A stretch of 64,000 nucleotides of DNA from Blepharisma stoltei ATCC 30299 (taxonomy: Eukaryota > Protista > Ciliophora): the NCBI GenBank assembly GCA_965603825.1, contig CBFDEM010000015.1:620001-684000 (forward strand), read 5' to 3'. This document shows, one piece after another, positions 33,401-56,618 of the stretch. The position numbers and the translations under genes were made by a program. The notes under the pieces are model-generated. The model saw only the letters and a program-made list of their open reading frames with translations, ran no database searches and was not told the DNA's origin. Within the stretch, counting starts at the first letter, position 1. Each line of letters starts with the position of its first letter.

Positions 33401-33704
33401 AGATAAACATATTCTTAACGAATGCATAAAATATAAAAACGAAAGAATCAAATTTATACAAAGATTACAAGATATGATAGGCAGATATATTAACAATACA
33501 AGCATATACAATTGACTTATTTCAGATGCTACAGAATTAAAATTTTTAGAAGAATTAGGTGAAGAAAAATGAGAAAAGATTGACTTTTTAACAAAGATCA
33601 CACTAAGAAGTATTGATGATAAATTGCGAACTAGCAGAGAAAACAGCAAATACAAGCATTTCTTTGAAATCCAAAATATTGAAGATGAAATAGTACGCCA
33701 ATAA
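30462..33704 (+). pseudogene. LINE ORF2 (endonuclease-reverse transcriptase), disrupted
   Basis: Frameshifting deletion near 30890 (the APE GDFN motif is missing) and a frameshift near 33190; RT core otherwise open with TGA=W. Confidence 0.85.
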
Positions 33705-34119: not shown

Positions 34120-34368
34120 TTAAAACCCTCCTTTCATCTGCTGGAGCACACGAATGACGCAGTTATTAGTCAATCTTAATTGTTCCAAAGTAGCAGCTCC
34201 TTGAGTGCCTATACTTAAATACTTATTCCCAAAAATCACACTTAATTCACCTTGGCCAAACATCTGTTGAAATTGGTTGTGAAGCTGAGCATAAGTTCAC
34301 GAGCTGTTTACTTGCAATGTGCGTTGTTGCCCGTTCATATCCTCTACTCTTATCGTCAAGTTCGACAT
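34120..34368 (-). CDS. Divergent mono-ubiquitin-like modifier, 82 aa, ending QMKGG-F (absent from the ORF track)
   Basis: Hand translation MSNLTIRVEDMNGQQRTLQVNSS-W(TGA)-TYAQL...TLEQLRLTNNCVIRVLQQMKGGF*. Beta-grasp pattern; clear paralog of 50323-50868, whose aligned Trp is TGG. Confidence 0.88.
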
Positions 34369-35196
34369 TTATAATTATAAGAAATGGAAATTTGTGTAGA
34401 TTCTCAGGTGATTTTATAAAGTAAATAATGAAATGATAAAATAGCTATTAAAATGAGATTTAAAGAAAGAAAACTGCAAGGATATTCTTTAATTACGTTG
34501 CATATATGATAGAAAATATTATTTTTAGAAATTTTATCTGAAATTATGCTGAGTTTTATTTTATTTTGATGTTTAATAATTTTGCCTTGGGTATAATAAT
34601 TTTATCTATTAAACAATGGGAAATCTTATTTAATAATGCTATAAAGTAATGAAAACAATTGATTTTGCTTGAGATGTTCTATAACTTTTGTGAAATCAAA
34701 ATTTTAAAATTTAGAATTAATTCTTATCAATAATATTTTTGGCAATTAAAAATTAAGAAATGCTTAAGCTATATTTCTTCTCTTACATTTATATCTGCAC
34801 TATTAATTTTATAAGGAAAATAATACAAGGCTTCATGCTGAATATTATTAGCTATAGGCTTGGTCAGATGCTAGTTAGGGGGGAACATTATATATAGTGT
34901 TTTAGGCGTTTTATTTATTTTAGTTATAATAAATTAATAAATTTCTTATCTTTATCTCAGTGAGAAGTAAAGTACTTTAAAATCATAATACATATTATTT
35001 TATATTATTTGACTTTGTAAAATGATAGGGTGCTAGGTTCATTCCTTTTATGACTGATTTCTTCAAGTCTAAGAACAGATAGACTTTTATTTGCTAACTA
35101 GTTTCTCTAAATCCTTAAAGGCTCAATTTTCATTTAAAAAATGCGGTAAACTTTATTTCAATGCTTTATAAAAATTTATAGATTCCATATTAATAA

Positions 35197-37990
35197 ATGG
35201 TGCAAAGACAAGATGTTGAAACCTATACCTTAGCTCAAGTAATTCATGCGCTCCGAGCAATTCAAGGGCATTGCAATATACTAGAAGAAGGTTCTACTCC
35301 TTTGCACGATAAGTTAATAAGGCAAAATTCTGATGAAAATTTAGATAATGACCTTCTAAATGAACTTACAAGCAGCATCCCAGTCAAAGCAATCCCATAT
35401 TCATTTATTGAGCTGTTAATCTTAATCTGAAATTCAGTAAATCCACAAAATCAAATATCCCAAGAAAATGATTCGGTCTTTATTTTTTATAAAAAATATA
35501 AATGATTGAATAAATTTTTGGAAGACAGAGAACTTAATGATATTTTCTTTATAGTTGGCAAGCGTCTATGCAAAACTGACTGAAATATTAAAGGCAAAAC
35601 CTACAAATGTTTATTTTTTAAACATAAAAATACCCAAAAATTTACTGTCAAAAGAAATAATTCAGAGCAAGAATACTTCTATAAATTTGGTGAGAGCAAT
35701 GAAGATTTATATGTTTCTGGGTACATAAATTCTGAGGTGCTCAATCAGAAATGCTCAATTTTACAAATTCCTATTAAAAGCAGTGAGATCAAGAGCAGAA
35801 AAGAAATAAATTATCTACTGATCTCTGATAACCAAAAATTATGAAGCTCTTGCTACCTTAATTCTCTTCTAAAAACACTTGTATACAATGATAAATTTTA
35901 CCAAAAAATCCAGACAGTGAAGTACCCATTATTTTTTGGTTTATCATCAGTATTGCTAGCTATTAAAGAATCTAAGCCACATTATAAAATTTATAAGCTT
36001 ACAAACTTACTTAAAAATCAATTAAAAGCTGAATTCCCTTGAGTAATTTTTTATATAGATTGAAAATTTCACCCAGCAAGAATGCAAAGAATTAATGATG
36101 GAGTTAATAGGCAGACTTTCAGAATTTACTGAAATAGATTCATTATTTGCAATTACAAATGAGCAAGCCTTAAATTTCAAGGAAAAAGGTGAGTATCGTT
36201 TTCTCAGCATAGCACCTCTTCCAGAAAAAGATGAAGAAAAGTGTTTTTGGGAGCAAATAATATATAAAGTGGCGCCTTTTATTAAATTCAATAGATTAAG
36301 CAAAGAGAAACCATATGCTTATTTTGAAAAAAATGAGGCAACTGCTTATTATTTGGCAGCAATTTTTACTGAAAATGAACAGAAATGAATTTATTGCAAT
36401 TCCTGCAATCAATGGATAAACATCAGTATAAATCCAAAAAACAAAGAAAAAATAATATTCAGTGAAGGAGCTGCATATTTTTATATAAAAATAAATAAAA
36501 AAGATTTTGAAAAAGATAAAGTTAGTAAGCAACTTTCGCTTGAATGGGAAAGAAGGAAATATAAACAAAAAAAATTGCCAGAGATATATAAATCCACAGA
36601 AAAAACCAAAAAAATTGAAATTGAAAAATTGAAAAATATTGAAATTCAGCAAAAAATCCAAAATAGCGAAGATATTATAAATAATTATCAGCTAGAGAGA
36701 TTGAATAATCAAGAAATAACAAATAATCGAAAAGAATTAATGGCTGAAAAAGATGAAAATGGTGAAAAAATGCAAAAAGATAATAGGATTCAGCGAAAAT
36801 TACAATGGAAATTAATAACTCTTAAAGAATTGATATTTGAAAACGAAATTCTAGAGAAAAGATGCATAAACTACGAAAACAAAGCTGAATTACTAGAGAA
36901 AGAAAATCAAACATATAAAGCTCAGAATGAAGTCTTAAATCAAGAAAAAGAAATTTATAAAGCTCAAAATGAATTTTTAAATCAAGAAAACCAAACTTAT
37001 AAAGCTCAGAATGAAGTCTTAAATCAAGAAAAAGAAACTTATAAAGCTCAAAATGAAGTCTTAAATCAAGAAAACCAAACTTATAAAACTCAACTAAAAT
37101 CATTAACTGAAGAAATAAAAAAGCTAAGAGAAAATAAGATCCTAAATTATCCATTAATTTTTGACAGAAAAAAAGCAGGGATTCCTAATATCGGGAATAC
37201 ATGCTATCTTAATTCACTCTTACAAGTGTTTGCAAGCAATAATGAATTTTGTGAGAAAATTCGACCACTAACATATGAATTATTCTCTACTTTGTCATCA
37301 CTATTAGTGAGTATTAGAGATCCCACAACTAATACAATCTGAGAGTTCGTGATGGCTTTTAAAAGTAGATTTAATGATGAATTTCCATGGGTAATCTTTA
37401 TATAGCTTGGCGATTTAACCCAGCAAGATTCTAAAGAAGTGTTGCTAATGCTAATAGGGAGATTATCAGATTTTACTAATATTGAACCTTTGTTTATAAT
37501 TTCATATAAACAGATATTAAATTGCCATGATTGCAATTATAAAGCAAAGGCGACTGAAACAAACACTTTTATTACAGTTCCCATTAACAAATTCAGTTCT
37601 ATACAAGAATTTATAACGGATATAAAAAAGCCAAAAAAATTCATTGGTGATGGAAGCCAATTATATTGCGAAAAATGCAATAAGCAGCAAGATATGACGG
37701 TTGAATATGAAGAAATTATATGGCCATCTACAGTTACCTTTTATTTATCCTCAAAGAATGGCAGAATTAGAATTAATAAAGAATTAGATATTGAAGGAAC
37801 TATTTATAGATGGTACGGATTAATATGCCATTATGGGGATTCATGATCTGGGCATTATTTGGCATATACATGGGATACTAACAATTGGACTGAATATAAT
37901 GATAGCAAGACAGCAAATCGCTGCAGCCGCAGCATTGATGTGGCAAATGGATATTTAGCCTTTTATGCAAGGGCAGGAAATCCCAAATAA
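35197..37990 (+). CDS. Multi-domain USP: divergent N-domain + degenerate USP + 14-aa repeat coil + intact USP, ~920 aa
   Basis: Open with TGA=W and introns at 36043-36058 (16 nt) and 37391-37405 (15 nt). First USP: SCYLNSLL/QQECKE with no recognisable His box. Second USP: GIPNIGNTCYLNS, QQDSKE, SGHY, YND. Confidence 0.82.
36902..37092 (+). repeat. 42-bp coding tandem repeat (~4.5 copies, ENQTYKAQNEVLNQ)
   Basis: TATAAAGCTCA(G/A)AATGAA...TTAAATCAAGAAAA recurs with a 42-nt period. Confidence 0.9.
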
Positions 37991-38803
37991 GAATAATAGT
38001 TATTTAAGGAAAATAATATTCATAAATATTAATGCATCTAAGGAGTTATAAATTGTAGGAAAAAATTCCAGAAGATAAGCAGAGGTAATTTCTTTTTACT
38101 AATCTGGCTATATCATTATATTTTATTTTGGCTAGTTTTCCTTTAATCGAAACTTTTTGATAATGTGGCATTCCTTAGTCACCTTTTTTTCTATTCCATT
38201 TCAAATTAATTTGTAGCATTATATATGAGTAGAAGTTACCTTTGAATATAGAGCTTTTTTATATTTTCCTTAATGCTTATCTAGGATCATAAATGATTTT
38301 TGAGAGGGCTTAGTTTTAGGTTTTCTTATCTTGTATTGAGTAAAATGCTATAGTAAAATTTCTTATACCAATTCTATGCTAAAATATATGTCGTTGTTTT
38401 ATATTTAGTTCACTGTAAAATCTATTCGAGCTGAAATATTAAATTAACTGCATGCCCTGTAGGCAGCAAAAAATTTTTACTCGCTTATAGAAAGGGATAT
38501 GCAAAAATAAGGCGTTATAACTTCCTGATTTGGTTTGTCAGCTCAAGAAGTTAAAAATAAGGCTAATAGCACATACTTGCCAACTACAGACTGATTTATT
38601 AATTATGCATATTGAGACTGCTCAGGAGAGCTTCATTACTTTTTCATAGACAGGGCTAACCTATGCCTAGCTAATCTAAATCCGCTTAGACAATATAAAA
38701 TATGCTCTGAATAATGAAATTTTATTTACGAAAATCCACACAATTTCTCAAACTGCATCATTAAAACTTTATCTTTTTATATTTAAATTTAAACTACTAT
38801 GGC

Positions 38804-40399
38804 CTATGAGCTTATAAAAAATGCAAGATAGCACGAACTGAAATCTGGCTGCCAAATCTTCGAGTTATTATCTAAATATTCTCTCCATGTGCATCCATCT
38901 TTTGTATATGCGGCATATTTCTTCGTGTTTTCTATCTGGTAAAGGCATTTGATTGCTCCATATATTTCATATTTTGATCCCATATAATTAAATTCTTCAG
39001 GGAGAATATATTGATTTCCTATTGGCAATTCTAATATTAAAAATGATCCCACTTCAATGGATTCTACTGTATTGCTCATCAATTTAGTTTGATTGCAAAT
39101 ACTACAAAAATCTTCATTTCAGGTACTTGTTTTTATATTTTGATCGATTTCTTCATGAATTGGTTTATTTGCAAAATTCATGAATTCAATAACATTTATA
39201 TAGTCCAGTTTTATATGCTCATGCCCAACTTCACAGTTAACTCTTGTTGTCAATATAGTTGAAAATAATTTTTGATTTGGATAATATTCATAAAGCTTAT
39301 TTATAAGCCAGTTTATCACATTTTTAGGGTCTTTTTCAAAGTTAGTCTATATAAAATTTACATAATAAGAGTTCTGTATTAAAGTTATGTTAAAATCTGA
39401 TAGTAAATTATCAACGAAATTTTGGAAATTTGACCTTTTCATAGTGTGAAATAAAATGTTTAAGCTCACTAGTGTTGGGTCTATTATACTTTTTGATAAT
39501 TCAATAAATAAAGATGTGCTGGCAAGAATCTGTAACGCCGAAGTGAGGTAGGAATTATCATTTATATCAGAAAATCCATGTTTTTGGTCAGGAAGAAGTG
39601 AAATCATTGAGGTAAATAAACTACCATTTCCTACAGTTAGGTAAGCTTGGCTTGAGTTGAGGTGCTGATTTTCAGGTTGAAAGGTATAATAATTCCTTGC
39701 TGGCTCATAATAAGCACTTCTTGATAAATTTAAATTACTTGCAACAGGCTCCTCATTTCTGCTTACTTGCCTTGAATTTTCAATAATTTGACTGAGTCTT
39801 CTTACCTCATGTTTTAACTCAGCTACGTTTTTTTCTAAGTCTTTTATTTTGGCATTATTTCCACTATTAATTTCTACTGTCCTCTCATTTCCTAAATTTA
39901 GCCCGCTCAGCACACAGCTATTGGCAATATCCCCGTAATTAATATATTCACTTATAAAGCTTTCAAGCTGTATTTGGACATCGTTAGGATCATTAAGCAA
40001 CAGGATTTTTAGCAATGCGTCTTCTTCATTTGTCCTTATTTCTTTTGTTGTTATAATTTTTCTTATATATTTGTCAATTATTCTGATTCCTGAGTCTAAC
40101 GATTTTAACCCATTTTTATTGATTTCTTCGAGGTTTTTCATATTTGTAGAAACCTCTGAGGAGAATTGTAATTTAATATTTTGGAGTTTTGATTTTTCTT
40201 CTTGAAAAGATTTCAGAATACTTATTATTGTGGGCTTAGCAGGTTTACGATATAGATATTCAAACCTATGAGTTAAAGAGTTAGAGGCGGAGTGAGATTT
40301 TTTATGTAGTTTGCAAAATACTAACTTTTGATCTTGTCAGTCGCACATGTACTTAGGTTTTCCATCGCATGATGGGAAGCTACAAATATTGTAGTTCAT
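38804..40399 (-). CDS. Catalytically dead pseudo-USP with N-terminal Cys/His (B-box-like) motif, ~526 aa
   Basis: ATG 40399; 15-nt intron at 39347-39361; TGA=W at 40337 and 39119. Cys box reads GFSDINDNSYLTSALQ (C>S); His box reads TKKYAAY (H>K). Confidence 0.78.
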
Positions 40400-41030
40400 G
40401 ATTAAAGTTTATTAAGAAATTTTAGTTTTGACCTTAATTCTTCATAAATGATTTTATTTTTCTGTAAAAATTAATTCTGAATACAATTATGAACTAGGCA
40501 GAGCTAATTGAAGAAGTTTATGGCGCTGCTAAGTTAAATTAAATCATTATTCAATAATATAATAAAAAATTTATTTCTTGCGATCAATATATAAAATTAT
40601 TTTAAGATTATAAAGGAATATTTTCTCTAGATCTAAAATTCTAATATAAAATTATTTGAAGAATGCATTTTTGGAAAAAAATTATAAAAATTTCTATCAC
40701 TCTTATGGAAATCATAATCCTCACCAAATCAATAGTAAATATAAAGACTATTTATTTATATATAAGAATTCAATAAATTAAAGACCAGGTTTAAGATAGC
40801 CCTTAAAAAACGCAAATATACATTCAACAGGTGTTCTGATCTTCTGTTCTCTTCTTAATATATACGATTTTCCTTTTTAATTAAATTAAATTAATATCAA
40901 CTATATAGATTACCTTCTATATAGTAAGGATACATTTAGCAATACATTTTGATATTCAAACCTTGCATCAAAAAAGTAATTATTCTCAATAATTAATGAT
41001 AAAAACATAAATATGTAGATTCCAATAAAT

Positions 41031-41876
41031 ATGGGTCCCTGTCTTGGCAGAAATGATCATCAAAGCGAACAGCAAAAAGGAATTCCAAATATTGGAAATA
41101 CTTGCTACATGAATTCTGTCATTCAAGTATTAGCAGCGACTCCGAACTTTTTAGCAAATTTGGATAGTGTCAAACAAGCTGAGTTAATTGCTTTGAAAAA
41201 TTTTATACAAGGAGTGAAATTAAGATATCCCTCATCAAGCTTATCAATTTTGGCCAATGATTTTAAAAATCAAATTTCTCAAGCACATCCAATTGTAATT
41301 ATAAAATAGTTTCAAGGGTCTAGAGAAAATGACGCAAAAGAATTATTTGCCATTATATTATCCATTCTAGGTGAAGAGGAAACGGTAACAAACCCATTCA
41401 ATATAGTTTTCAAAAGATCATTTAAGTGTGAAGAAAAGAACCATATTGCTTATTCTGAAGAAAAATCAAATTTAATTATTATTCCAAAAGGAGCTAGCAT
41501 TGAAAATCACCTGAAAAATATGGATAGTGAAAAGAAGTTCTGAGGAGATAACCAACTCTATTGTGAAAAATGCAAAAAAACTAAAGATATAACTATGAAA
41601 ACAGAAAGAATTGAATTACCAGAGATTTTAGTCCTTTACACTCCAAAGGATGGAAATTCAAAAAATAATACTAAATGCCTTAATGAAGTTATTTTAGAGC
41701 AGAAATCGTACATACTTTATGCTGTTATATGCTATAACTCATGGCCTCGACATTATTATGCATATACAAGAATCTCAGAAAAATCTTGGCGCAAATATAA
41801 TGATGATCGTACAAGTGAGTCAAATAGTTTACCCGAAAAAAATGCATATCTTTTGTTCTATAAGTCTAATTATTAA
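41031..41876 (+). CDS. Minimal USP-family peptidase, 276 aa, N-terminus MGPC
   Basis: GIPNIGNTCYMNS; intron 41295-41309; ENDAKE; CEKC; RHYYAY; WRKYNDD; AYLLFY. Confidence 0.9.
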
Positions 41877-42317
41877 ATTTATAAGATAAAGATTTCTAAG
41901 TAAACTAGTTGATTATCATAATAATAAATAGCTTAAAATTTTATTTATATTTAAATAACTTAGCCAAACTTTTTTAGTCTCATCCACAAAAGCATAATTA
42001 TATTTAATCCATCTTCTTTGGATGCTCCCTATAATAATAGCTGCACATTCCACTATAGCAATAAATATTCACTCACCTGTTTCAATTTATCATATATTCA
42101 AAATATGTGCTTATTTAGAATTTAGCTTAAATCATAGATTAAATTAGACTATAAATAATTCATTTAGTTGTAAGTTAAATAATTATAAATAAAATCAATT
42201 CTGTAGAATCTTAATCTTCGCTTTTATTTTATCCTTAAGTAATATAATTTAAAAATAAAATTATTTAGAAGAGCAAATAATCTTTAAGAACTGCATTACC
42301 ACTATAAATTTATAGAA

Positions 42318-43364
42318 ATGGAAGTCAATATTAAAAAAGCAGCTGAAACATTTTTGAGTTTCTATCTAGCATGCTTATTCTGGCTGATTGCGACTTGTGT
42401 ATGATATCTTTATTGCTTATGAGAAATATTTTATAGGCTCTTACATTTGGCTTTTAAAAAATTTCCACATTATGTAATGATCTTTATAGGATGCTTATTT
42501 TCTTGTTTTAGATGTAAAAGAAAAGCAAAAAGAAAAAATCAAAATTCTTACAGCATGCCCGAGCAATATAGGAAACAAGGGATTCCAAATTATGGAAGCA
42601 CCTGCTATTTAAATTCAATAATACAGATATTGTCTAGTACGAATGAGTTTGCTAGTTCAATAAAAAATTGTTTTGGGCTATCAGATATTTTTGACGATTT
42701 GAGATCTCCAAATCATGATTTTGAGCCTAAAATACAGAATTTCTTATTAAAGCTAAGCAAGGAGCACGAAATGGTAATTTTAGTTCAGTTTTCTTTGGGA
42801 AAGCAAAATGATTGTAAAGAGCTCTACAATATTCTTATTGAAACTCTTGCAAAAGAAAACTCAGATGCAGAGAATTTCTTTAAGATTGTTAAATACCAAA
42901 AAATAATATGCAGCATGAACCATAATCAAGAAAAACCTGAGACTTCTTATTTTCTTCTTTATCCAAAAAGCGCTAATTCGAGCTTAGGCTCATATTTAAA
43001 AGACTTAAAAGATAAAGCAGATGAATTTAATGAGAATAATCCTTTATTTTGCGAAAAATGCAATTGCTTAAGAGCTACAACAATTAAGATCGTTTCTTTA
43101 GAGCTGCCACAAATATTGGCAGTCTATTTACCAGGGAAACCATTTAAAAGCATAAAATCAGTAGAAAGTATTAATTTTGAAGGAAAATATTATGAGCTCT
43201 ATGGAGTAATTTGCTATTTTGAGCATAAATATTCTAGCCATTATATAGCATGCACACTAGATGAAGATGGCAAGTGGAGAGAGTATAACGATGCTTTTGC
43301 TACAGAGAAATGCCCAGATATGAAGAATGCTTATATGCTGTTTTATAGGGTTAAAAGCAAATAG
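42318..43364 (+). CDS. USP-family peptidase with hydrophobic/Cys-rich N-terminal anchor, ~343 aa
   Basis: ATG 42318, with two TGA=W in the hydrophobic leader; GIPNYGSTCYLNS; stop-free in-frame intron 42774-42788; QNDCKE; SHYIA; YND. Confidence 0.88.
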
Positions 43365-43907
43365 TTAGAAACATATTTATTTTTCTTTAATAAAACTCAT
43401 TTTAAGGCTTAGATATGTGTAAAATGAAGACGTTTTTGAGTTACTTTTGGCTTGGTATTTTTATAATTAAGAGTAAAAGAAAATATGAGAGTTAATTATA
43501 GTTATCATTAATTATTAGAAATTCTTGGAGTTGAATATTTGCTGTATCCTATTATTTGCTATGGATAAAGAAACAATTATAAGCAATATCTGGGTAAGCA
43601 TTTTCTCAAGGAGTTTGGATAAATGTGATGATTTTAAGTTGAAAGCAGGGGCTTTGATTATAAGAAAAATTATCGTATATTTGCAAAAAATAAGTGATAG
43701 CGCTGCATTTTTAATTATTTATAAAATAATTATTTATTTAAATTTATGTAGATTTGTTAACTCGGATAATTAATTATCTAGTATTTTGACTATTTCTGTG
43801 ATCAAATGGCAGGGTTATTGCAATAGCAGTTCCCTCTGCCTATAGAGACACAAATAATCAGTTAAAATTTCATAATTCTATAAATTTGCCCTATAGAATA
43901 TATAAAA

Positions 43908-44984
43908 ATGCAGCAAGAAGAAAAAGAAGGCGAAAGAAGTCAAAATCGCAGTTTTAAATTTTATTTATATCTCTTATACATATTATCACAACTGGGCAGC
44001 TATTGCAGCTTGATTTATGGTGCAATAGCCAGATATTGCGAAGGGATATGCGATTTCATAATATGACTAATATGCTGCAAGATTAGGGATCATAAAAAGT
44101 TTGAATGAGATAACCAAATAGAAAATCCAAACTATTTCAGCCAAGAGGAAATCGTAAATTACCCCGGAATAAAAGAAAATTATTCCAGAAAATTAGGAAT
44201 CCCGAATTTTGGGAACACTTGCTACTTGAACTCAGTTTTACAAATTTTAGCAAGCACCCCAGAATTTTCTAAATGCTTAAATCCAGATTTTGAGCTTTCA
44301 GGAACTTTATTAACCATTATCAAAATGATAAATAAATACTCAGACACTAATTTTCAGCCAGAAATAAACAGCCTTTTAAAGATCATTCAGCAATCATATT
44401 CAGACGTATTTTCTAAATAGTTTACTTTAGGCAGACAAAATGACAGTAAAGAAATATTTGTAATTATAATCGATAAATGCTCAGAAATTAATGAAAATTT
44501 GAAGGATTTATTTTTTATTAGAAAAGATGAAACAATTATTTGTGAAAATGGACATATAGAAAAAAAAGAAGAGGTGGAAACACTTTTATTAATCCCTCAA
44601 AATTTCAATAAAGATATTAGTGGCTTTATAGATATTTTAGAGCAGAAAAGCGATTTTAGTGGGGAAAATAAGTTATACTGCAGCACCTGCAACAGTTTAA
44701 AGGACGCTAGTATTACCTCAAAATATAAGCTGCCAAAATTTTTAGTTTTTTATTTTCCTGGTGAAAATCCGAAGAAAAGGAATATTAAGGAATCTGAGAC
44801 ATTTAAAGATAAAGAATATGAACTTTATGGAATAATTTCTTTTTATCCGTCTTACCGACATTATATAGCTTTTACGTTAGATGGTGGAATATGGAGAGAG
44901 TATAATGATATATCAGTGACTGAAAAGAAGCCTGATTATTATTATACTTATATGGCGTTTTATAGACATGCAGAGAAATTATAA
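43908..44984 (+). CDS. USP-family peptidase with hydrophobic/Cys-rich N-terminus, ~353 aa
   Basis: ATG 43908; GIPNFGNTCYLNS; intron 44406-44420; QNDSKE; RHYIAF; WREYND. Confidence 0.88.
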
Positions 44985-45412
44985 AATAATTTTAGATAAT
45001 TTAATAAAAGTATGCAATCAAAAATAAATAATTTTTGGAAATTTTTGATAATAAATCATCAAAAAGAAGGAAATTTTGCAAGTGTTAAACCAAGTTTGTA
45101 ATTTGGGGGATGGCGTTAAATAGTGACATTAAATCATTAATCCTCTCTAAGAATTCTCCAATTTGCAGTTAAGAGCATTGCAAAACTCATAAAAAATTGT
45201 CAGATAAGAAAGCTGGAATTCATTAAAAGCTACTAATAATTTAGAAAATTAAACCTTTTAAATTGGAACATTTTTTAGTATTTAAAGGGGAGGGATCTCG
45301 GCCCATAGTAATTTTTTTATAATAGTCTTTTTTTAAATTAGATAAAAAATATGCAACTTTTCAGACATAAGATTAAATTTAAAATCTTAATGAGGCAAAA
45401 TAACCATAATAA

Positions 45413-46147
45413 CTATAATTTAAGCAAAATAAAGCCTCCATTAAAACAGTCTAACACTATCAGCTTAGAATTAGCTGAAATTCCTAGTGCTTCTAGTGTT
45501 GAACTCCCGTTCTCAGGAACTCGAAGTGTTTTTGACCCAAGTATACAGACTATTCCCCTCTTTCCAAGCTTATCGCGAATATTTCTCTCCAACGTTTCAA
45601 AAGTGTCAGTCTTTTTGGTATTAAAAATAATAAATCCGTCTTCAAACTCAATCATAATTCTTATTTCATCTTTACTCACTCTCACAGAAGTTGAACTAGT
45701 AAAATCTAAATCTTTTAAGGAATAGTTTTCTTCTGTTGCCAAATCAAGTCTCTTTTTGTAATTTCTGATAATAACTTCTTTATGCATTTCGATGTCTTGG
45801 CTAATGTTAAATTTAGCTTTCACTAAATTGGTGAACTCAGAAAGCTTCATATCGCTGCTTCTTATTTCAAGAACCTCTTTTCTATCTCCATATTCTACAG
45901 AGATATACAAATCAGGGATAATTTCAATATCTAAGCAGCTGTTGTTCATAATTTTTAATTCAAGGAGAGATTTTTCGCCATCACGGTTGAAATTGAGGTA
46001 GTTTGGATTTTTGAGGATTTTGAGATCATTAGTCAGGGAAAGGGCAGCTTGGATATTTTGATAGAGCTCAGAAAATTTCATATCAGCTGAGGCTTCAACT
46101 ACAAAGTTTTCTCCTCCAATTACCTGAATTATAATCCTTAAAGACAT
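45413..46147 (-). CDS. Tri-ubiquitin-like protein, 244 aa, ending CFNGG-FILLKL
   Basis: Three ~78-aa beta-grasp repeats (ending SLLELKIMNNSCL / SLKDLDFTSSTSV / TLEALGISANSKL); GG only after the last repeat. Confidence 0.8.
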   Translation of the reverse strand: MSLRIIIQVIGGENFVVEASADMKFSELYQNIQAALSLTNDLKILKNPNYLNFNRDGEKSLLELKIMNNSCLDIEIIPDLYISVEYGDRKEVLEIRSSDMKLSEFTNLVKAKFNISQDIEMHKEVIIRNYKKRLDLATEENYSLKDLDFTSSTSVRVSKDEIRIMIEFEDGFIIFNTKKTDTFETLERNIRDKLGKRGIVCILGSKTLRVPENGSSTLEALGISANSKLIVLDCFNGGFILLKL

Positions 46148-46614
46148 TTTATCAATGGAATCTATAAATTTTTATTAACTATGAAATTGTGCTTTTAATA
46201 TGGTTTTTATAAAATTTTAGTTGAGATCGAACCTAATAAGGAGATCTGTTAATTTGAAATTAATGATAACTTATAGAAGCTTGCAAAGATCAAAAACTGG
46301 AAGAGTATGTGGAAGTTATAAGATAAACCATCTAATTTCTTGCAAAATTTACTATCTCAAGAGATGTAATGATTTTTTTTATATATTATATCCTGAATGA
46401 GGGATTCTTATTTACTATCTTGATTATTTCCCCACTTTATAGAAATTACCTTTCATATCCATATAATCTTATATGGATTTTATGCCTTTATATTTATTTT
46501 AGAAATAAAAGATAGATCTTCAATGAATTTTGGGTTCTCATTGTAAGCCTATTAAGAAAATATAATAAAATCTCAAGATTAAATATTTTAATATTTTAAT
46601 AACAATCTGTAGAA

Positions 46615-47055
46615 ATGGAAAGACTTCAAGCTGAGTTTAACGCAATTCAATCAGAAAGTCATCCAGAATACTCTGTTGAAATAGTCAATAACAATTTTTT
46701 CCACTGGAAAGGCACTCTTCAAGGACCTCAAGACACTCCTTACCAAAATGGAAAATTTAGGTTCGAAATTGTTTTCCCTCAAAGTTACCCCGCATCACCT
46801 CCTGAATTTTTTTTCAAAACAAAGATTTTTCATCCCAATATATACGAAGTCAACGGAGAAACTTGTGTGAGGGTTCTAAATATTTCTTATAATAGAAATA
46901 TCCCAGTTAGAATTATTATTGCTTATGTATTTGATCTGCTGGCGAATCCTAATCCTGATGCAGGGTATGTCCAAGACTCAACTCATGCTTATTTGTATAA
47001 TAGGCCAGGATATACATCTATGGCTGCTGAGTGGACAAGATTATATGCAATATAA
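46615..47055 (+). CDS. Divergent E2 ubiquitin-conjugating enzyme, 146 aa
   Basis: W.G.L.GP.DTPY..G.F, FP..YP..PP, FHPN, catalytic Cys (GETCVRVL), AAEWTRLYA. Confidence 0.93.
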   Translation: MERLQAEFNAIQSESHPEYSVEIVNNNFFHWKGTLQGPQDTPYQNGKFRFEIVFPQSYPASPPEFFFKTKIFHPNIYEVNGETCVRVLNISYNRNIPVRIIIAYVFDLLANPNPDAGYVQDSTHAYLYNRPGYTSMAAEWTRLYAI

Positions 47056-47183
47056 TTCTTGATTGTAGGCATTGCGAGAATTTATTATCAATAGAGATAA
47101 ATGCTTATTTAATAAATTTCTTATTTTCTAATAAATAATAAATTAATTAGATAATAACTCAATGACATATTTATAGAAATATA

Positions 47184-48608
47184 ATGAGCAAAAACTACAA
47201 TTTGAGCTATTCAAAAAATATATTATCACTTGCATGCAGTGCATTAAAGATTCTTAATCAATATAATTGCTTAGCCAACAATAAAACAAGCCTGTTTTAT
47301 AAGATAGTGAATTCAGATATAAATGACAGAAACCTGACAATTTTGAGTGATAGTCTTCCTAAAGATGGAAACAGTCCAAATATTTTTGAAGCTTTAAAGT
47401 TCCTATTATTATCAAAAGACTCTTTAGTTGCTGAAAAAGTCTATTTTTCTCGTAATATTTCATTTATTCGTGAGGAGGAAATATTTAATAAAAATAATGA
47501 CATAGTTATTATTTATGATCAACGGAGTCCAAGTATTGATAAAGATCATTATGAAAATTTGGGCTTTTGCTTGACTTTTTCAATTAACGTTAGTGAGACA
47601 ACAATGATAGATTACACTCAAGGAGTTAAAGAAGTTACTGAATGGAAATTTTATCAAAAATCACATCCTGGATATATTTATTGTTTTTGGCGAATAAATT
47701 CTCAGGCAAGTCAGCAGCAATTCAATGAAGAATCAAAGGAAATTATGCAAAGCCATTCTCCAAGAACTCTATCTCTAAACCTTCCCAATACACCCATTAA
47801 CCCAAATTATAAAGGACTTCCAAATTTAGGAAACACTTGCTACCTAAACTCAGTCCTACATATCCTAAAATGAACAGAAGGGTTCGCGTCATTGATTCAA
47901 TTATCTAGAACCCCCCCAATTCCACAATTATTTGCTGTTCTGTCTATTATGAACACCACTCAAGGCATAGAGAATCCCTTGAGAACTTTAATTTCCAGCT
48001 TAAACAAAACCTTTAAAGATGTAATTTTTAAATAGTTTCATATAAAAAAAAACCATGATGCTAAAGAGTTATTTACAGTTCTTATTGGCGAAATAGAAGA
48101 AAATATCACAAATCTCTTTTGTATAGTAGTGCATAAAACTCTGCATTGCCATCATAATGAGAGATATAGCATTGACCATGCAGAAGAAATAACCGAGAAA
48201 TTCCTGTTTTTATGTGTACCATATGGTGATGTTGAAAGCTATTTTATAAGGCTAGGAGAAGATCAATGATTTGAAGGGGAAAATTCTTTAAGGTGTAAAC
48301 GCTCAAATACCTTAAAAAGAGCTAGAATTTCGACTAATAAAATAGACTTTCCATCGAATTTGGCAATTTATGTGCCGCCATCAGAATCGAGGAATGAAAA
48401 TATTAAGACGAGTTTTATTCAAGAAGATAATCTATATCTCCTTTATGGAGTCATTGCGTACAATCCTTATATTCTTCATTATTTTAGTTATGTTTTGATC
48501 GAAAATAACTGGATAAAATTCGATGATGAAACTGTTACTTATGAAGCGCCAAGGCTTGATTTTGCTTACCTGTTGTTTTATAAAGCCACCTTTCTGCTAG
48601 CTGATTAA
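47184..48608 (+). CDS. USP-family peptidase with divergent N-terminal domain, ~469 aa
   Basis: GLPNLGNTCYLNS; TGA=W at 47871 and 48267; intron 48021-48035; NHDAKE; LHYFSY; WIKFDD. Confidence 0.85.
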
Positions 48609-48741
48609 TTCAAATAATAATTAATCTATTCTGAGAATTTTAAAATCTGATAAAAAAAGTTAATATATTATTTAAAAAAGCATTGGGACGGAAAACCTGT
48701 GAATTCAATATAAGTAGTTAAATTTATAGAGTTATTATTAC

Positions 48742-50238
48742 CTAATTTCTTTTATAAAATAGCATATAAGCGTTATCAAAGTCAGGGTCTTCATATGATA
48801 CTGATATATCATTATATTTTTCTCATTCTCCTTCTGTATTTATTGTATATGCAATATAATGGCCATAAGTGCTCACTCCATAATAGCAAATTATGCCATA
48901 CAAGCAATAACTTACATTATTGAGCTCTATTTCCCTAAATTCCTTAAATTCCCTCCTTATGCTCATCAAGCTGCTAGTTCTTTTTGGCATATAAAATGCT
49001 AAATTTAAGTGGCATTTTATCTCCAAAACATTTAATGTCGTATCTGCTAATCTCTCACAGTTTTGGCAGTAAAGCTGATTTTGATTGATATATTTCTTAG
49101 GCAACCTTTTATCATCAAAGTATTTTTTAATGTTTAAATAATGCGGAGGAACAGTCATAAACAGCTCTGTTTCGCAATTATAGCTCTTATGAAGATGAGT
49201 GTTATGGCATTCGAACATTTGATCAATATAGACTTCAAAAAAATGATTTTGAGGGTTTAATTCATTACAAAATGAAATAATTTGGACGAATAGCTCCTTT
49301 GCATCATTTTGCCCGTATCCTAAAAACTGCATATAAATTACCATAGGAAAATTCTGCCCAAGATCAGTTTTAAAAGTTTCTGCATTTCTCTCAACGCTAT
49401 TGGCTGAACGGTATTTTATTGAATTTAATAATTTGTTGAGAGATATTTCTAGAGAGGTTTGCAGTGAAAGATTTTCTGAAAACCCTGGAGTTGAAGCTAA
49501 AATTTGTAGAACAGAATTCAAGTAGCAAGTGTTTCCGATATTCGGGATTCCAATTTTTGAAAAATATCCTAATGGTCTTCTTTTTCTAATTTTTTCTTCT
49601 GAAGAATATTCTTCATTAGCTCGTTTTTTTGGTACTTTTTCTTTGATTTCGCTCTCATACTTAAAACATAAAAACGACACTTGAAGTTCTGGGGGAAATT
49701 TTTCAAGTTTACTTATGTTAAGTGAACAATTTAATTGAGATCAGTTGCCCTTGTCTTTGAAAAAAAGCTTTTTTGAAGGAAATGATATTGCAGACACCAA
49801 AGAATATTGATAATTCTGAATAGTGATTTCATTTTTGATGCTTAGCTGGGATTTTTTAGATGAGATGAATAAGAGATCATATTTTTTATTGATGTCTTTC
49901 TTTATTTCTTCCTCTTGCTTATAAGAATCATCAGGGAGGCAAACTCATAATTTAGCAATATCTTCAATCTGTCCGCTGCTCGTAAAAAAAATCTTTATAA
50001 AATGCTTCAAATAGCTAAATCAATCAAACAATCGCAAGTTAAAATATTTAAAAAACATTTTCTTAAAAATTTCATTATCCTGATTTCCCTCATCTAATTC
50101 CTTAAATAAATTTTGCAAAGCAATCATCCAATTACAGGTTGATGAAATTTTTTGTAAAAATGAGTATTCCTTGTTTAAATTGTGGAAAAAGTAGAGATTA
50201 GACTTAAAATTCCAATATTGATCGTTATGTGCTTTCAT
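48742..50238 (-). CDS. USP-family peptidase with degenerate USP-like N-domain, ~493 aa
   Basis: ORFs 50020 and 48823 share a frame via TGA=W (50020, 49945, 49741, 48823); GIPNIGNTCYLNS; stop-free intron 49327-49341; QNDAKE; YGHYIAY; TAG at 48742. Confidence 0.85.
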
Positions 50239-50322
50239 TTTTATTTGTAGATTCAAAACTTTTAATAGCTTAAGTTAGCAAAAGCTCTTTTGATATGAAT
50301 TATAAAGAAATTTATATTTTAG

Positions 50323-50868
50323 TTAATTTTCGGATTTTATAAAACCTCCAACCATTTGCTTCATAACTTTAATGGTAGAGTTATTACCAATTCCTAATGT
50401 TTGCAGGTCTATTTCACCATTGCTGGTTAGAGAAAGGTACTTATTTCCTTTTATAATTGTCAATTCTTGGTTTCCAAAAATCTGCAAGAATCTTTCATAG
50501 AGGTGCTTAAATTGCAGATTTGGAGGAACTTGAATTGTCCTTTTAGTTCCTTCATTGTCTTCAATGACTATAGAAATTTGCTGAGGAGCTTGCACTGGAG
50601 GCTGTTCAGGAGCAGGTGGGTTGGGGTTTTGAGGCCTTTGAACACTAACAACGCGGATAACTGAATTATTGGTGATATTTAGTTGCTGCAGTGTGAGGTT
50701 TTGGGAGTTCGGACCGATGTATTTATTTCCATACATGACTGTGAGTTCGGTTCCACCAAACATAGTCTGCAGATGTCTAAGAAGCTCAGAATATTGCCAA
50801 TCACTCTTGCCTTGCAGAATTTTTGTTGTTCCGGTAGCATCTTCGATTCTTAAAGTAAGATTTGACAT
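50323..50868 (-). CDS. Di-ubiquitin-like protein with Pro-rich linker, 181 aa, ending QMVGG-FIKSEN
   Basis: Two mutually similar beta-grasp domains; paralog of the mono-Ubl at 34120. Confidence 0.88.
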   Translation of the reverse strand: MSNLTLRIEDATGTTKILQGKSDWQYSELLRHLQTMFGGTELTVMYGNKYIGPNSQNLTLQQLNITNNSVIRVVSVQRPQNPNPPAPEQPPVQAPQQISIVIEDNEGTKRTIQVPPNLQFKHLYERFLQIFGNQELTIIKGNKYLSLTSNGEIDLQTLGIGNNSTIKVMKQMVGGFIKSEN

Positions 50869-51129
50869 ATTTTATAGAAACATGCACAATGGAAAATTAA
50901 TAAAATTCATAAATTTAAGAGTTTTAAGAAAGCTATTTGCGGAATTTCAAAAAAATTAGTAACTTATAAGCGAATTTGGCTAGTTTTACTAATAGCATAT
51001 TTTAACTACTCAGCTGCTTAAAGTTCAATTGTAATAAACTCGTTACTGAAATATAGAAACTAAGCCAAATTTCAATTCATAGGAATAAATGTGTTTCTAT
51101 CTAATCAAAAATTATTATTAAAAATTAGT

Positions 51130-51720
51130 TTATATTTCTGTAAGACACCAAATAAAGGAGATTCCAATCAGGACTTCATCAATTGACCACTTAATCGTTA
51201 AATTCCTACCATAAGCCTTTTTTATCATCTTTAGCAAACGCTATAAAATGGTTTCCATAATAGAATATCGCTCCAAATATATTATATCTGAACGCTTCAC
51301 CACTGCAGCATACTTAATGACTCAGACAAATTTTTAGTAATCCCTCCAAATTTTTATAGCAATATTGAAGAATACCTTCGAAGCTACAAAACCCAGCAAT
51401 ATTCAGAAGCAATGATTTATTAAAATGTAACTTATGCGGCTCAAATTCGATTTCCATGATGAATGAGTCCTTATAAACAAGCCAACTTACTTGATATTGT
51501 CATTTCAAGGCATAGATGCTATAGTCAGACTTCCTAAAAGTTTGGATTTTGAAGAAATCGGTGCTCTCTGTTTGAGTTGTGTCTTATACAGTTCATGGGT
51601 CTTCTGGGCATTATACAACATACACAAAAGAAAATTACTCATCAATACATTATAATGATAAGCATATGCAAATATTGATTTTCAGAATGGAATTCCTAGG
51701 GTTTATTTAGTTTTTTATTT
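51130..51720 (-). pseudogene. Decayed USP relic
   Basis: LGIP remnant near 51700. His-box remnant YNIFGAIFYYGNHFIAFAKD followed, after a frameshift, by W*EFND* near 51200-51285. Confidence 0.55.
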
Positions 51721-51837
51721 GCTGAATTCTTTGGTTTCTTACTAAAAGCACTGCTGCATATGTATATTTAAGCGAGCATTGTCCAAATATTGGAGCTTTA
51801 TTAATTATTAATAGTAAATCTTGTTTCCTAAATGTTT

Positions 51838-52290
51838 TTATCCAAATGCATCTCTAAATGTTCTTTCTCTTGCTATATTGAATCATTCTTCTCTGCTTAT
51901 TAAGCAAATATCAGCTGCCTCACACATAAATCCATGCTCTGGCTCAGGCCTGTTCAGTAATTCGATGAGATAGTCAATGATAACCCTGGGATGGCAGTTT
52001 GGGTTTCACATATGGTTAAGCAGAGAATGACAAACTCTTCCATTGCTAGGGAAAATATTTGGATGGAATATGGGTGTCTGAAAATATACTTTGGGAGGCT
52101 TGCTTGGGTATTTTTTGGAAAATTTTATTAAAAATTCAAAAAGACCGCCTTCAAAAGCAGTGCCTTCAGGCCCATTGAGATTTCCGAGTCATTCATAGTA
52201 GTCTCCCTGGTGAGTATTCACAGAAACAAAAGGCTGAGGATTTGCTTGCAAATCATTCAGTTCAGTCATAAGTCGTTGCAACGCTGCCAT
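51838..52290 (-). CDS. Divergent E2 enzyme, 150 aa (absent from the ORF track)
   Basis: MAALQRLMTEL..YE-W(TGA)-LGNLNGPEGTAFEGG, YPSKPP, FHPN, GRVCHSLL, W(TGA)NP, NRPEPEHGF; TAA at 51838. Confidence 0.9.
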
Positions 52291-52856
52291 ATCAAGCTTA
52301 TAAATTGTAATTCTACAAAAGTTAATAGCTTTAAAGAAGTAAAAAAGTAATCTTTTAAATTTTCGTTAAACTATAATTATAAATTACCCCATTCCTTGCT
52401 CTAAAGTATATTTTATAGCTTAAAAATTTCTGCTTATAGATAGTTATTTCCTTGATGTATGCTCACAGGCAAGAAGCTTAGGATTACCTTCCAAAAACTT
52501 AGTTCAGGTATGGTTTATATTATTCTGATCAATTAAAAGAAAAATGCTATATCATTTTTCCTCCTTGCATATATCCATTCTATAGAATCTCTTAGTAAAA
52601 GTAATAATCATGATTACACAAGCCTGAACTCTTATTTATAAGTTGTCACCATAGAAAAGCATGGCGATTTTATCCAACTTTTAAATATCAATATAGCAAC
52701 TACGTATTATGGCTAAATTTAAAGTTTATTTTATAGTTTATTCTGGATTAAAGGCCCATTTGTATATCATTAACTTAGCCCTAATAACTCTAAGCTTGGC
52801 TACAACTAATCAAAATTTTATTTATAAGTCAATTTGCATTCAATAGATTTATAAGT

Positions 52857-53336
52857 TTATCCCATAGCGTGTCTATACGTATGCTCTCTTGCCTTCGCTA
52901 TAAATTCATCTTTACTTCTTTTAAGGACAGTGGTTGGGTCATGGGCATACCCACCAGCTGCATTTGGGTCATTTAATAAAGCAATTATATAGCTTATAAT
53001 GGTCTTTGGAGTAAATCTACTATTCCACCCACCGCCCACGCCACCACGAAAAATCGGCAAGCAAACATTTCCATTTCCATTTCCACTGTCTGAATAAACA
53101 TTTGGATGAAAAATAGGAGTAATAAATTTGCACGTAGGAGGGTTAGTTGGATAATCAGCAGGGAAATTTAGCTGAAATTCGAAAAGTCCTCCTTCATATG
53201 GAGTTCCAGGCGGGCCATTGAGAGTTCCCTTCCAAAGTCTGAAATTGTTTCCATCAATATCAGCTGTCGCATAAGGTAAAGGATCAGATCTCATCTCATT
53301 CAAGTCTCTCATAAGTCTTTCGGTTGCGCTGTCCAT
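52857..53336 (-). CDS. Divergent E2 enzyme with Gly-rich loop insertions, 159 aa
   Basis: WKGTLNGPPGTPYEGG, FHPN, GNVCLPIF, GGVGGGW, DPNAAGGY. Confidence 0.93.
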   Translation of the reverse strand: MDSATERLMRDLNEMRSDPLPYATADIDGNNFRLWKGTLNGPPGTPYEGGLFEFQLNFPADYPTNPPTCKFITPIFHPNVYSDSGNGNGNVCLPIFRGGVGGGWNSRFTPKTIISYIIALLNDPNAAGGYAHDPTTVLKRSKDEFIAKAREHTYRHAMG

Positions 53337-53429
53337 TTTTAATTATTAAGATTCTATAATTTTTTGAGGTTTTGTGCTATGATAGATTGATTTTATTTTA
53401 TTTCATTATATAAATTATAGATATCTAGA

Positions 53430-53740
53430 ATTATTGTAAAGAGCTCTACAATTCTTTGATTGAAACTCTTGCAGAAGAAAATTCAGATGCAGAGAATTTC
53501 TTTAGGATTGCTAAATACCAAAAAATAATATGCAGCATGAACGATTATGAAGAAAACCTTGAGACTTCTTATTTTCTTCTTTATTAATTTTCTGGAAATT
53601 TTGGTTATTTCTGTGATCGAATGACAGAGCTATTCAATAGCAGCTCCCTCTGTCTATAGAGACACAAATAATTAGTTAAAATTCATAATTCTATAAATTT
53701 CGCCCTATTGAATATATAAAAATGCAGCAAGAAGAAAAAG
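53430..53740 (+). pseudogene. Duplicated fragments of the USP at 42318 (mid-gene) and the USP at 43908 (upstream region + first codons)
   Basis: About 53430-53583 matches 42810-42961; about 53605-53740 matches 43790-43927, ending ATGCAGCAAGAAGAAAAAG. Confidence 0.85.
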
Positions 53741-53935
53741 CTTTTAAAATTTTGATTCAGCTGTTGAAATGATATAAATAATTGAGAATTTATAAAAATT
53801 ACAAAATGCGAGATATTACTTTATAAATGCAAATTAAATAATAACAAATAAAACCTTTAATGAAATTAAAAATTATTTATTCAATTAAATCAAAAATTTA
53901 TTTATGACATATTATCCATCTATAATTTATAGAAT

Positions 53936-54499
53936 ATGCAGGGCAACGACAACTCAATGGTAACTATAACTTTAATCGACATCGATGGTCGGCCAGCAGA
54001 AAAAGAGATAAATCTTAATTGAACCTTCTCTTTATTGGCAAGACCTCTATTAAACGAATATGAAGCAGATAATCAAAGTCTCGCTCTGAATAATGGAACA
54101 CTTTTAAGGTTGGTAGATCATCAAAGCGAAAAACTTCGTGACTTAGGATTTGAGGGCGAAAAAGTAGTAAAAATAATGCATGCAAAAAAAGGCTGTCCAG
54201 ATATATCAGTTCGCGTTGAAAATTTGATAAACTCATCAAAATTTAGTGTTATGGTAAACCCTTTATCAAAATGTTTTGATGTCTGCCAAATGCTTGAAAC
54301 CAGGACTGGATTACGTCTATTAAATAATAGAGAAGCTTCTGTTATGGTGAAATCCGTTTATTTGAATTTTGAAAACAATTATTATAAAACGCTGAGAGAT
54401 TTAAAAATAAAGCACAATGAAAGTTTGAATATCTTGAAATTTGAGCGTGGAGGTCTTTATTGTGCAAAACGAATCAATTATTATAAAGCACCAAATTAA
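53936..54499 (+). CDS. Divergent di-ubiquitin-like protein, 187 aa, ending FERGG-LYCAKRINYYKAPN
   Basis: ATG 53936; TGA=W at 54020 in the same position as the other Ubls (INLN-W-TF); two beta-grasp units (KLRDLGFEG, TLRDLKIKHN). Confidence 0.78.
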
Positions 54500-54644
54500 A
54501 TGAAAAGAGAGTCGAATTGAATAATGATTAAACTTTTAGTAATTTTCTGATATATTTCTTATAAAATTCATGCTGAGTCTCAAAAATATGCCAAAAACAT
54601 ATATTTTAATTGTTTTCTTATTTAATTTCATGTATTAAGAAATT

Positions 54645-55265
54645 TTTGACCCAAGCATACAGTCTATTTTTCTTATTCCAAGCTTATTACGAATGCCTCT
54701 CTCTAACTTTTAAAAAGTATCAGTCTTTTTGGTATCAAAAACACGAACTTCTTCATTAAATCAAACATAATTCTTATTTCATCCTTAAGCACTCTCAGAG
54801 TAGCCGAACTAGTAAATCTAAAGCTTTTAAAGAAAAATTTCCTTGTGTTGCCAAATCTAGTCTCTTTTTGTAATCTCTGATAGTTTCTTCTTTCTAAATT
54901 CGATGTCTTGGTTAATTTTAAATTTAGTTTTCATTAAATTAGTGAACTCAGAAAGCTTCATATTGCTACTTCTTATTTCAAGAAATTTCTTCTATCTCCA
55001 TATACTACAGAGATATGCAAATCAGGGATAATTTTGACCTCTAAGCAGCTGCTGTTCATGATTTTAAATCAAAGAGAGATTTTTCGCCATCAAGGTTGAA
55101 ATTGAGGTAGGTTGCATTTTTGAGATTAGTGAGGATTTTGAGATCATTAGTCAGGGAAAGGGCAGCTTGTATATTGTAATAGAGCTCAAAAAATATCATA
55201 CTGGCTGAGGCTTTAACTACAAAGTTTTCTCCTCCAATTACATGAATTCTAATCCTTATGGACAT
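54645..55265 (-). pseudogene. Frameshifted, 3'-truncated copy of the tri-Ubl at 45413
   Basis: Close nucleotide match to 45530-46147 with several indels; the GG end is lost. Confidence 0.88.
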
Positions 55266-56203: not shown

Positions 56204-56618
56204 ATGGAAAGACTTCAAGCTGAGCTTAACGCAATTCAATTGGAAAGTCATTCAGAATACTCTTTGAAATAGTTAATAACAATTTTTTCCACTGGAAAGG
56301 CACTCTTCAAGGGCCTCAAGACACTCCTTACCAAAATGGAAAATTTAGGTTCGAAATTGTTTTCCTCAAAATTACCCTGCATCACCTCCTGATTTTTTTC
56401 AAAACAAAGATTTTTCATCCCAATATATACGAAGTCAACGGAGAAACTTGTGTGAGGGTTCTAAATATTTCTTATAATAGAAATATCCCAGCTAGAATTA
56501 TTATTGCTTATGTATTTGATCTGCTGGCCAATCCTAATTCTGATGCAGGGTATGTCCAAGATTCAACTCATGCTTATTTGTATAATAGGCCAGGATATAC
56601 ATCTATGGCTACTGAGTG
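56204..56618 (+). pseudogene. Frameshifted copy of the E2 at 46615
   Basis: Near-identical to 46615-47032, with 1-nt deletions at about 56263, 56365 and 56392 and a truncated 3' end. Confidence 0.9.

Follow-up and report, generated by a model that had tools for sequence, protein, structure and literature searches.

Has the ciliate Blepharisma stoltei acquired protein tags of its own, distinct from ubiquitin? The question is raised by a 64,000-nucleotide stretch of its genome (the window; contig C15, positions 620001-684000, about 30% G+C, all C-numbers being contigs of this genome), in which four genes, here called U1 to U4, encode proteins of one, three, two and two ubiquitin-like (Ubl) domains, each closing with a Gly-Gly (GG) pair and a tail. 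They lie in an island of genes for ubiquitin-conjugating enzymes (E2s) and ubiquitin-specific proteases (USPs), which also holds a gene for a ubiquitin-activating enzyme (E1). Eukaryotes are known to possess only about a dozen types of conjugatable Ubl modifier, almost all of them ancient and universal, and lineage-specific ones, such as ISG15 and FAT10, are rare. No description of such a system in Blepharisma was found in the literature searched. We favour the reading that U1-U4 are real ubiquitin-family genes and encode the precursor tags of a Blepharisma system that works with the E1, E2s and USPs of the island. The fold of the proteins, the conservation of the terminal GG and a matching change in the E1 carry this reading, and three alternatives are weighed against it below.

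The four Ubl genes, their fold and their Gly-Gly ends

Blepharisma stoltei ATCC 30299 uses UGA as a Trp codon and has introns of 15-16 bp (PMC9942806). Read in this code, U1 (34120-34368, minus strand) is a single-domain protein of 82 residues with the C-terminus QQMKGG+F, the plus sign marking the end of GG; U2 (45413-46147, minus strand) is a three-domain protein of 244 residues ending DCFNGG+FILLKL; U3 (50323-50868, minus strand) is a two-domain protein of 181 residues ending KQMVGG+FIKSEN, with a Pro/Gln-rich linker at about residues 78-95; and U4 (53936-54499, plus strand) is a two-domain protein of 187 residues counted from the first ATG (the database model P0005 begins at 53957 and has 180 residues), with KKGC at its internal junction and the C-terminus KFERGG+LYCAKRINYYKAPN. 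The caps that follow GG measure 1, 6, 6 and 15 residues, respectively. U1 and U4 each contain an in-frame TGA (34297-34299 and 54020-54022), and both open reading frames (ORFs) are whole only if TGA is Trp; the same code (table 4) merges broken ORFs of the window into a 783-residue reverse transcriptase and into USPs of 300-680 residues. Ciliate code 6, in which TAA and TAG encode Gln, was ruled out because the long ORFs stop at TAA or TAG and read through only at TGA. That U1 is a pseudogene with an in-frame stop was likewise ruled out, since its TGA aligns with a TGG Trp codon of its paralogues and the database entry P0002 is the read-through product of 82 residues.

The public annotation (GCA_914767885.1) has U1 as a gene, together with an identical 244-residue U2 product. 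No tiny host-type introns that would alter the C-termini were found in or near the C-terminal coding parts of U1-U4, and the RNA-like contigs that cover U3 run collinear with the genomic sequence. All four ORFs are intact, with the coordinates, C-termini and domain counts (the latter from the family alignment and from the structure models of U2 and U4) that a sequence-only reading of the window had given. That reading overlooked a fifth gene, U5 (about 54632-55265, minus strand), a degenerate three-domain copy of U2 with frameshifts and TAA/TAG stops, in which the GG-bearing C-terminal part is gone; U5 belongs to a local duplication that comprises U2 and the neighbouring E2.

The four proteins are only about 20% identical to ubiquitin and are not among the 132 PF00240 matches of the genome, and the Pfam matches that they do give, all sub-threshold, are exclusively to beta-grasp families (Ubiquitin_5, UAE_UbL, PB1, ubiquitin and Rad60-SLD). 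A search of PDB sequences with U2 by phmmer gave no usable match. We aligned 13 domain units of the family, including the copy of U1 on C8 and leaving ubiquitin out, and searched the PDB with the resulting profile (A2): 341 sequences matched, and all 60 of those listed are ubiquitin, polyubiquitin or ubiquitin-derived variants. Against single ubiquitin, A2 scored E values of 3e-4 to 1e-3, with positions 3-81 lying on ubiquitin residues 1-76 and the GG of U1-U4 in register with Gly75-Gly76. Paralogues on C12, C1 and C11 pass PF00240 at 33 bits and match U3 at an E value of 4e-6.

Structure prediction, which the sequence-only reading had named as a check, gave the beta-grasp fold. The AlphaFold2 (AF2) model of U2 (predicted local distance difference test, pLDDT, 76.8) comprises three units at residues 1-76, 80-158 and 161-233 and a disordered tail, and that of U4 (pLDDT 79.5) two units and a disordered tail; each of these five units has the topology beta-beta-alpha-beta-beta-beta, and both chains are disordered from GG onward. 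The input alignment of U2 (A3) left the middle domain nearly alignment-free, with pLDDT of 49-53 around residues 121-140; in A3 and in A4 most single units were placed on one domain, and A4 was trimmed to A5. In Foldseek comparisons U2 matched linear tetra- and tri-ubiquitin first (E value 1.6e-14), then the USP7 HUBL array, ISG15 and FAT10, and U4 matched linear di-ubiquitin first (E value 2.5e-11), then ISG15 and FAT10, both with probability 1.00; the tandem Ubl of OASL was among the lower matches, and the USP7 array was matched by U2 only. For the ESM Atlas models of U3 and U2, the feature and structure neighbours all fall in ubiquitin and Rad60-SLD clusters. U1-U4 are ubiquitin-fold proteins; for U1 the assignment comes from sequence, through 44% identity to U3 and through the C8 copy (91% identical to U1) among the rows of A2.

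Is the GG of these proteins conserved as an attachment site would be? Genome searches with the proteins and the family profile gave about 39 domain matches, nearly all in few places, and translation of the matched loci yielded 13 intact genes with 13 terminal and 9 internal domains. The two Gly residues are the most conserved columns of the terminal domains (13/13 and 12/13), whose pairwise identity has a median of 24% and a minimum of 11% (n = 13). None of the nine internal domain ends carries GG, the nearest remnant being KGC in U4 and its relative on C9, and on this count a polyubiquitin reading was set aside. Such a terminal-only GG is the pattern predicted for a processed attachment site. 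With tail lengths in residues, the 13 genes end in KGG+F (two genes), VGG+6, NGG+6, RGG+15, KGG+N, PGG+stop, LGG+10 (two genes), KGG+10, NGG+9 and QGG+R, and the exception ends in KGC followed by a stop; one paralogue terminates exactly at GG and has no cap. The canonical polyubiquitin of this genome ends in LRLRGG+F or LRLRGG+Q, so the single Phe that caps U1 is an ordinary precursor design. The C-termini themselves show that LRLRGG is absent from all four window proteins, as had been remarked from the sequence. In the alignment with ubiquitin, position 72 is Gln in U1, Cys in U2, Gln in U3 and Phe in U4, and never Arg; U1 and U3 have Gln72-Met73 in common.

Several claims of the sequence-only reading bear on these ends. 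That GG stands only after the last domain and is kept despite very low overall similarity agrees with the counts above and with the one ortholog found, which keeps KGGF; a single terminal GG in the multi-domain forms also upholds the proposed ISG15/FAT10-like layout over that of polyubiquitin. The claim of a hydrophobic-led tail stands for U1-U4 (F, F, F and L) and fails for the paralogues, whose tails begin with N, K, D, P or R or are missing; a hydrophobic first tail residue is confined to the four window genes and the C8 copy of U1. Similarly, the four window precursors would each need a protease, as had been stated of every precursor, but the paralogue that ends at GG and the tri-unit gene that ends in KGC would not.

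The tri-unit gene (C18:551.6-552.3 kb; L014 1252-1959, minus strand) encodes 235 residues in which three U1-type units are fused head to tail. At its junctions, where QQMK runs directly into NLAIRVED, the GG, cap, stop and start have been removed. It suggests how multi-domain tags may have arisen, by head-to-tail fusion, and is itself a copy in decay or else a derivative that cannot be conjugated. Other relatives depart from the window genes in different ways. The U4-type two-domain paralogues on C9 (L020 2669-3238, L031 1345-1938 and L034 531-740, all plus strand) begin with MGGKSS or MGGSSS, which resembles an N-myristoylation signal and is followed by a Pro/Ser-rich stretch; window U4 has no such start, and some of the C9 copies may be membrane-anchored. 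A canonical ubiquitin unit with LRLRGG is joined to a divergent, GG-less Ubl domain in several genes at L001 (C35:592.9-596.1 kb); these genes form a separate ubiquitin-related family in a genome with at least 132 PF00240 matches.

U1 and its C8 copy have a ratio of nonsynonymous to synonymous substitution rates (dN/dS) of 0.15 at dS 0.35, the C12/C1 pair gives 0.35, and the three units of the C18 gene give 0.6-1.0, all these values resting on small counts. The sole ortholog found is an MMETSP transcript with a complete 83-residue ORF, 87% identical to U1 and with the same QQMKGGF end; B. japonicum is the only Blepharisma known to be represented in MMETSP. Word-based homology searches with U3 and U4 returned self-matches only, and an exhaustive phmmer search with U3 against 1.84 billion representative sequences returned, besides U3 itself, only U1, a repeat protein judged spurious and a distant, GG-less protein with three Ubl domains. 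For expression we used contigs from four runs of a single study, guessed to be RNA, on a stretch that contains U3 and U4. These contigs sit on genes and leave intergenic stretches and U5 bare; the deepest in the mapped stretch lie on U3 (50300-50803, four runs), and low-depth contigs lie on U4 (54053-54400, two of the four runs). At least the U1 and U3 types appear to be transcribed.

The island E1 and its counterparts in known systems

The island runs from 34 kb of the window to the end of the contig (694.6 kb of C15) and contains about 12 USPs, five E2s, one E1, the four Ubl genes and several remnants. About 70 high-scoring USPs (Pfam) are scattered over the genome, and a low-scoring USP subfamily is concentrated on C15, C35, C9, C8, C18, C11 and C12. 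It is on these seven contigs, too, that the paralogues of the Ubl genes and the closest ones of the E2s lie, and the extra E1 genes co-locate with them. The Ubl family is almost confined to Blepharisma and lies in about seven paralogous islands, several of them at contig ends.

The E1 gene of the C15 island, about 6 kb beyond the window, encodes a UBA1 paralogue of 1017 residues with an intact catalytic Cys motif. The E1 SCCH domain (PF10585) has seven matches in the genome, including the canonical E1 on C28, the island E1 with its identical copy on C35, and two genes that flank the C11 island. The island E1s are 75-87% identical to one another and 45-48% identical to the canonical C28 enzyme. 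We compared pocket residues by their offsets from the catalytic Cys, which in yeast Uba1 we take to be Cys600. The pocket of yeast Uba1 that receives Arg72 of ubiquitin consists of Asn574, Gln576, Tyr586 and Asp591 (PMC3731359). At these offsets the C28 E1 has Asn, Gln, Tyr and Asp, and the C15 island E1 and one of the C11 E1s keep Asn, Gln and Tyr and have Gln in place of Asp591. In the second C11 E1, which shares 87% identity with that of the C15 island, the catalytic Cys is gone; the two C11-flanking genes are L040 (C11:1175.8-1178.9 kb) and L039, and the Cys-less one reads ILTDNL against IPECTL. The Asp-to-Gln replacement in the island E1, taken with the fact that each of the four tags lacks Arg72, makes conjugation more likely. 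Judged from the sequences, the change in the pocket and that at tag position 72 point the same way, as a correlation and not as proof.

One of the closest known modifiers is ISG15 (with UBA7, UBE2L6 and USP18), which likewise has two tandem beta-grasp domains, one GG after the second and a C-terminally extended precursor, and which works with an E1 and an E2 of its own and a protease of the USP family, as is proposed here; its structures rank high among the Foldseek matches of both U2 and U4. ISG15 differs in carrying LRLRGG, where the tags here have QMVGG, FERGG or CFNGG, and in being a vertebrate protein, whereas in this ciliate the enzymes are clustered with the tags and one- and three-domain versions occur as well. 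By sequence the two are not orthologous, as a search with the family profile leads to ubiquitin and not to ISG15. As to membership, the two-domain layout is present in U3 and U4, and the LRLRGG tail and a specific sequence relationship are absent; the resemblance is one of mode of working, not of membership. FAT10 (UBD; with UBA6 and USE1) shares two domains, a tail without Arg72 (CYCIGG in FAT10) and, if the island E1 acts as proposed, activation by a UBA1 paralogue, and the FAT10-UBA6 structure is among the Foldseek matches, but FAT10 is translated with a free GG and is not processed, whereas all four window proteins are capped. NEDD8 offers a precedent in that residue 72 and the E1 pocket separate its pathway from that of ubiquitin (PMC3731359); it is, in contrast, about 60% identical to ubiquitin and has a heterodimeric E1, whereas the island E1 is a single-chain UBA1 paralogue. 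Polyubiquitin also strings beta-grasp units head to tail and has a single residue as cap behind its final GG (LRLRGG+F in this genome, KGG+F in U1), but every one of its units carries a terminal GG and is set free as a monomer, whereas the junctions of U2, U3 and U4 are without GG.

Proposed conjugated tags and the alternatives

If U1-U4 are precursors of conjugated tags, a USP, probably one of the island, would remove the tail after GG, and the exposed Gly would be adenylated and thioesterified by the island E1 with its Asp-to-Gln Arg72 pocket. The tag would then be handed to the island E2s and on to target lysines, to be taken off again by island USPs, and the multi-domain forms would act as one tag in the manner of ISG15 and FAT10, not as polyubiquitin precursors. 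Several points weigh against this reading. No E3 ubiquitin ligase was seen in the island. None of the four proteins reaches the Pfam ubiquitin cut-off of 25.4 bits, the best being U3 with 14.2 bits. No orthologs of U2, U3 or U4 were found in any database searched, and the conservation of their GG rests on paralogues that share descent. The family also makes non-conjugatable forms, for example the C18 tri-unit protein ending in KGC. The runs behind the expression data are guessed to be RNA, the cover of U4 is thin and comes from two runs, and U1 and U2 lie outside the mapped stretch. U5 and the remnants of USPs and E2s fit a fast birth-and-death process, in which some of the intact-looking genes may be declining.

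That no E3 was seen in the island would suit proteins that have the ubiquitin fold and are never conjugated. These might act non-covalently, as adaptors for instance, or on the USPs, E2s or E1 as regulators, inhibitors or pseudo-substrates, with GG fitting the clefts of the enzymes and the tail staying on. The roughly threefold excess of USPs over Ubls in the island accords with such a role, as do the family forms without a usable GG (the C18 tri-unit with KGC, and a two-domain Ubl protein on C41 that lacks GG). We nevertheless consider it unlikely, since GG is found at the extreme end and never internally, as befits a processed site and not a binding epitope; the tails, like known precursor caps, differ from one another in length as well as sequence and are predicted to be disordered; in one paralogue GG is the very end of the protein; and the linked E1 carries a pocket change that matches tag position 72. 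A different view takes the window copies as young, decaying and functionless duplicates in a subtelomeric, ubiquitin-derived family, with GG and the adjacent enzymes as ancestral leftovers. Decay is certainly at work in the islands: beside U5, the window holds degraded remnants of a USP C-terminus, an E2 and another USP (51000-51300, minus strand, and 60600-61750, plus strand), broken copies lie on C18 (of U3), C9 and C11, one island-type E1 on C11 is without its catalytic Cys, the dN/dS among the units of the C18 gene is high, and several islands are at contig ends. For the four window genes this account is improbable, because their ORFs are intact while true pseudogenes nearby are full of stops, the U1 type has a low dN/dS and is transcribed in a second transcriptome source (87% identity), U3 is the gene best covered by RNA-like contigs, and a GG left intact at 11-24% identity indicates long persistence under constraint. 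That the island is a foreign or mobile cassette, brought by a giant virus or by the adjacent non-LTR (long terminal repeat) retrotransposon and equipped with its own ubiquitin-like system, seems to us highly improbable. Its islands are multi-copy and often terminal, and an element resembling a LINE (long interspersed nuclear element) with an intact 783-residue reverse transcriptase ORF adjoins the one on C15; yet the genes use the host code with TGA as Trp, their 15-nucleotide GTA..AG introns are of the host type and occupy a conserved site, the canonical UBA1 of the host shares 45-48% identity with the island E1, and no relatives outside the lineage were found among the 1.84 billion representative proteins, viral collections being outside that search.

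Returning to conjugated tags, we regard as an open bet, at slightly less than even chances, the larger proposal that the islands constitute a second tagging pathway of Blepharisma, with modifiers of one, two and three domains, its own E1, E2 clade and USP clade, residence in duplicating subtelomeric islands and possibly no need of an E3. With the same reserve, such a pathway could be an independent invention in the style of ISG15 and FAT10 by a protist, in which the E1 pocket co-evolved and tag diversity came from domain fusion. If true, it would show how a new Ubl pathway originates: through duplication of UBA1, E2 and USP genes, through fusion of tag units in which the internal GG disappears, and through joint change of tag residue 72 and the E1 pocket; it would also be a source of E1-tag pairs that are orthogonal by nature. 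In a eukaryote it is unusual for the genes of tag, E1, E2 and protease to be physically clustered, and their presence at one locus would make reconstitution of the pathway easy.

Proteases, conjugating enzymes and other features of the islands

The left part of the island is dominated by USP genes. A degenerate copy, USP_a (about 35197-36600, plus strand), precedes USP_b (ending at 37990, plus strand), which has intact Cys and His boxes and a 15-nucleotide intron at 37391-37405. USP_c (38804-40399, minus strand; intron 39347-39361) is USP-like, with Ser for the catalytic Cys, a degenerate His box and an N-terminal Cys/His-rich, zinc-finger-like module; it has a paralogue on C18 (L011 13-1065, minus strand) and, to judge from these residues, is probably inactive, a candidate pseudo-protease. 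Three compact genes with intact Cys and His boxes follow on the plus strand, USP_d (41031-41876), USP_e (42318-43364) and USP_f (43908-44984), the last encoding 353 residues. Beyond U2 lie USP_g (47184-48608, plus strand, 469 residues) and USP_h (48742-50238, minus strand, 498 residues; RNA-like contigs on 49450-50050), both with intact catalytic boxes, and, to the right of U5, USP_i (56883-58775, minus strand, 625 residues) and USP_j (59637-60575, plus strand, 307 residues), each with the conserved 15-nucleotide intron. The lengths of USP_f and USP_g match the public annotation. This single GTA..TAG intron, common to all USPs of the island, occupies a conserved site just upstream of a Q-x-D motif, and its removal makes the USPs whole; in USP_e (42774-42788, plus strand) and USP_h (49327-49341, minus strand) it is a stop-free GTA..CAG, which if unspliced reads through as VILVQ and VIYMQ, respectively. 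After intron removal the Cys and His boxes are intact in 11 USPs, and one USP has Ser for the catalytic Cys.

E2 genes are interspersed among these proteases. The one at 46615-47055 (plus strand) encodes a UBC-fold protein of 146 residues with the HPN motif and the catalytic Cys (Pfam UQ_con, E value 2.9e-35), and its nearest paralogues are located in other islands. Two more, at 51838-52290 and 52857-53336 (both minus strand), are covered by RNA-like contigs, and a fourth (61946-62386, plus strand) again encodes 146 residues. By their linkage to the Ubl genes, the neighbouring USPs are plausible candidates for precursor processing. The sequence-only reading had gone further and proposed distinct Ubl-USP pairs from the differing residues ahead of GG; such pairing is not supported beyond proximity, as about 12 USPs stand against four Ubls, Gln72-Met73 is common to two of the Ubls, and segmental duplication can account for the Ubl-USP adjacency that recurs on other contigs.

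From 47859 to 64000 the window is 100% identical to C35 from position 754372 onward, a stretch with U3, U4, two E2s, several USPs and then the E1. Rather than an evolutionary duplicate, it probably represents one stretch of DNA that entered two contigs of the assembly, or an alternative form of a macronuclear chromosome. At the opposite side, the left edge of the island is adjoined by the LINE-like non-LTR retrotransposon (29608-33704), in which, with TGA as Trp, the reverse transcriptase ORF spans 30841-33192 and is preceded by an ORF of 295 residues with a CCHC-like start.

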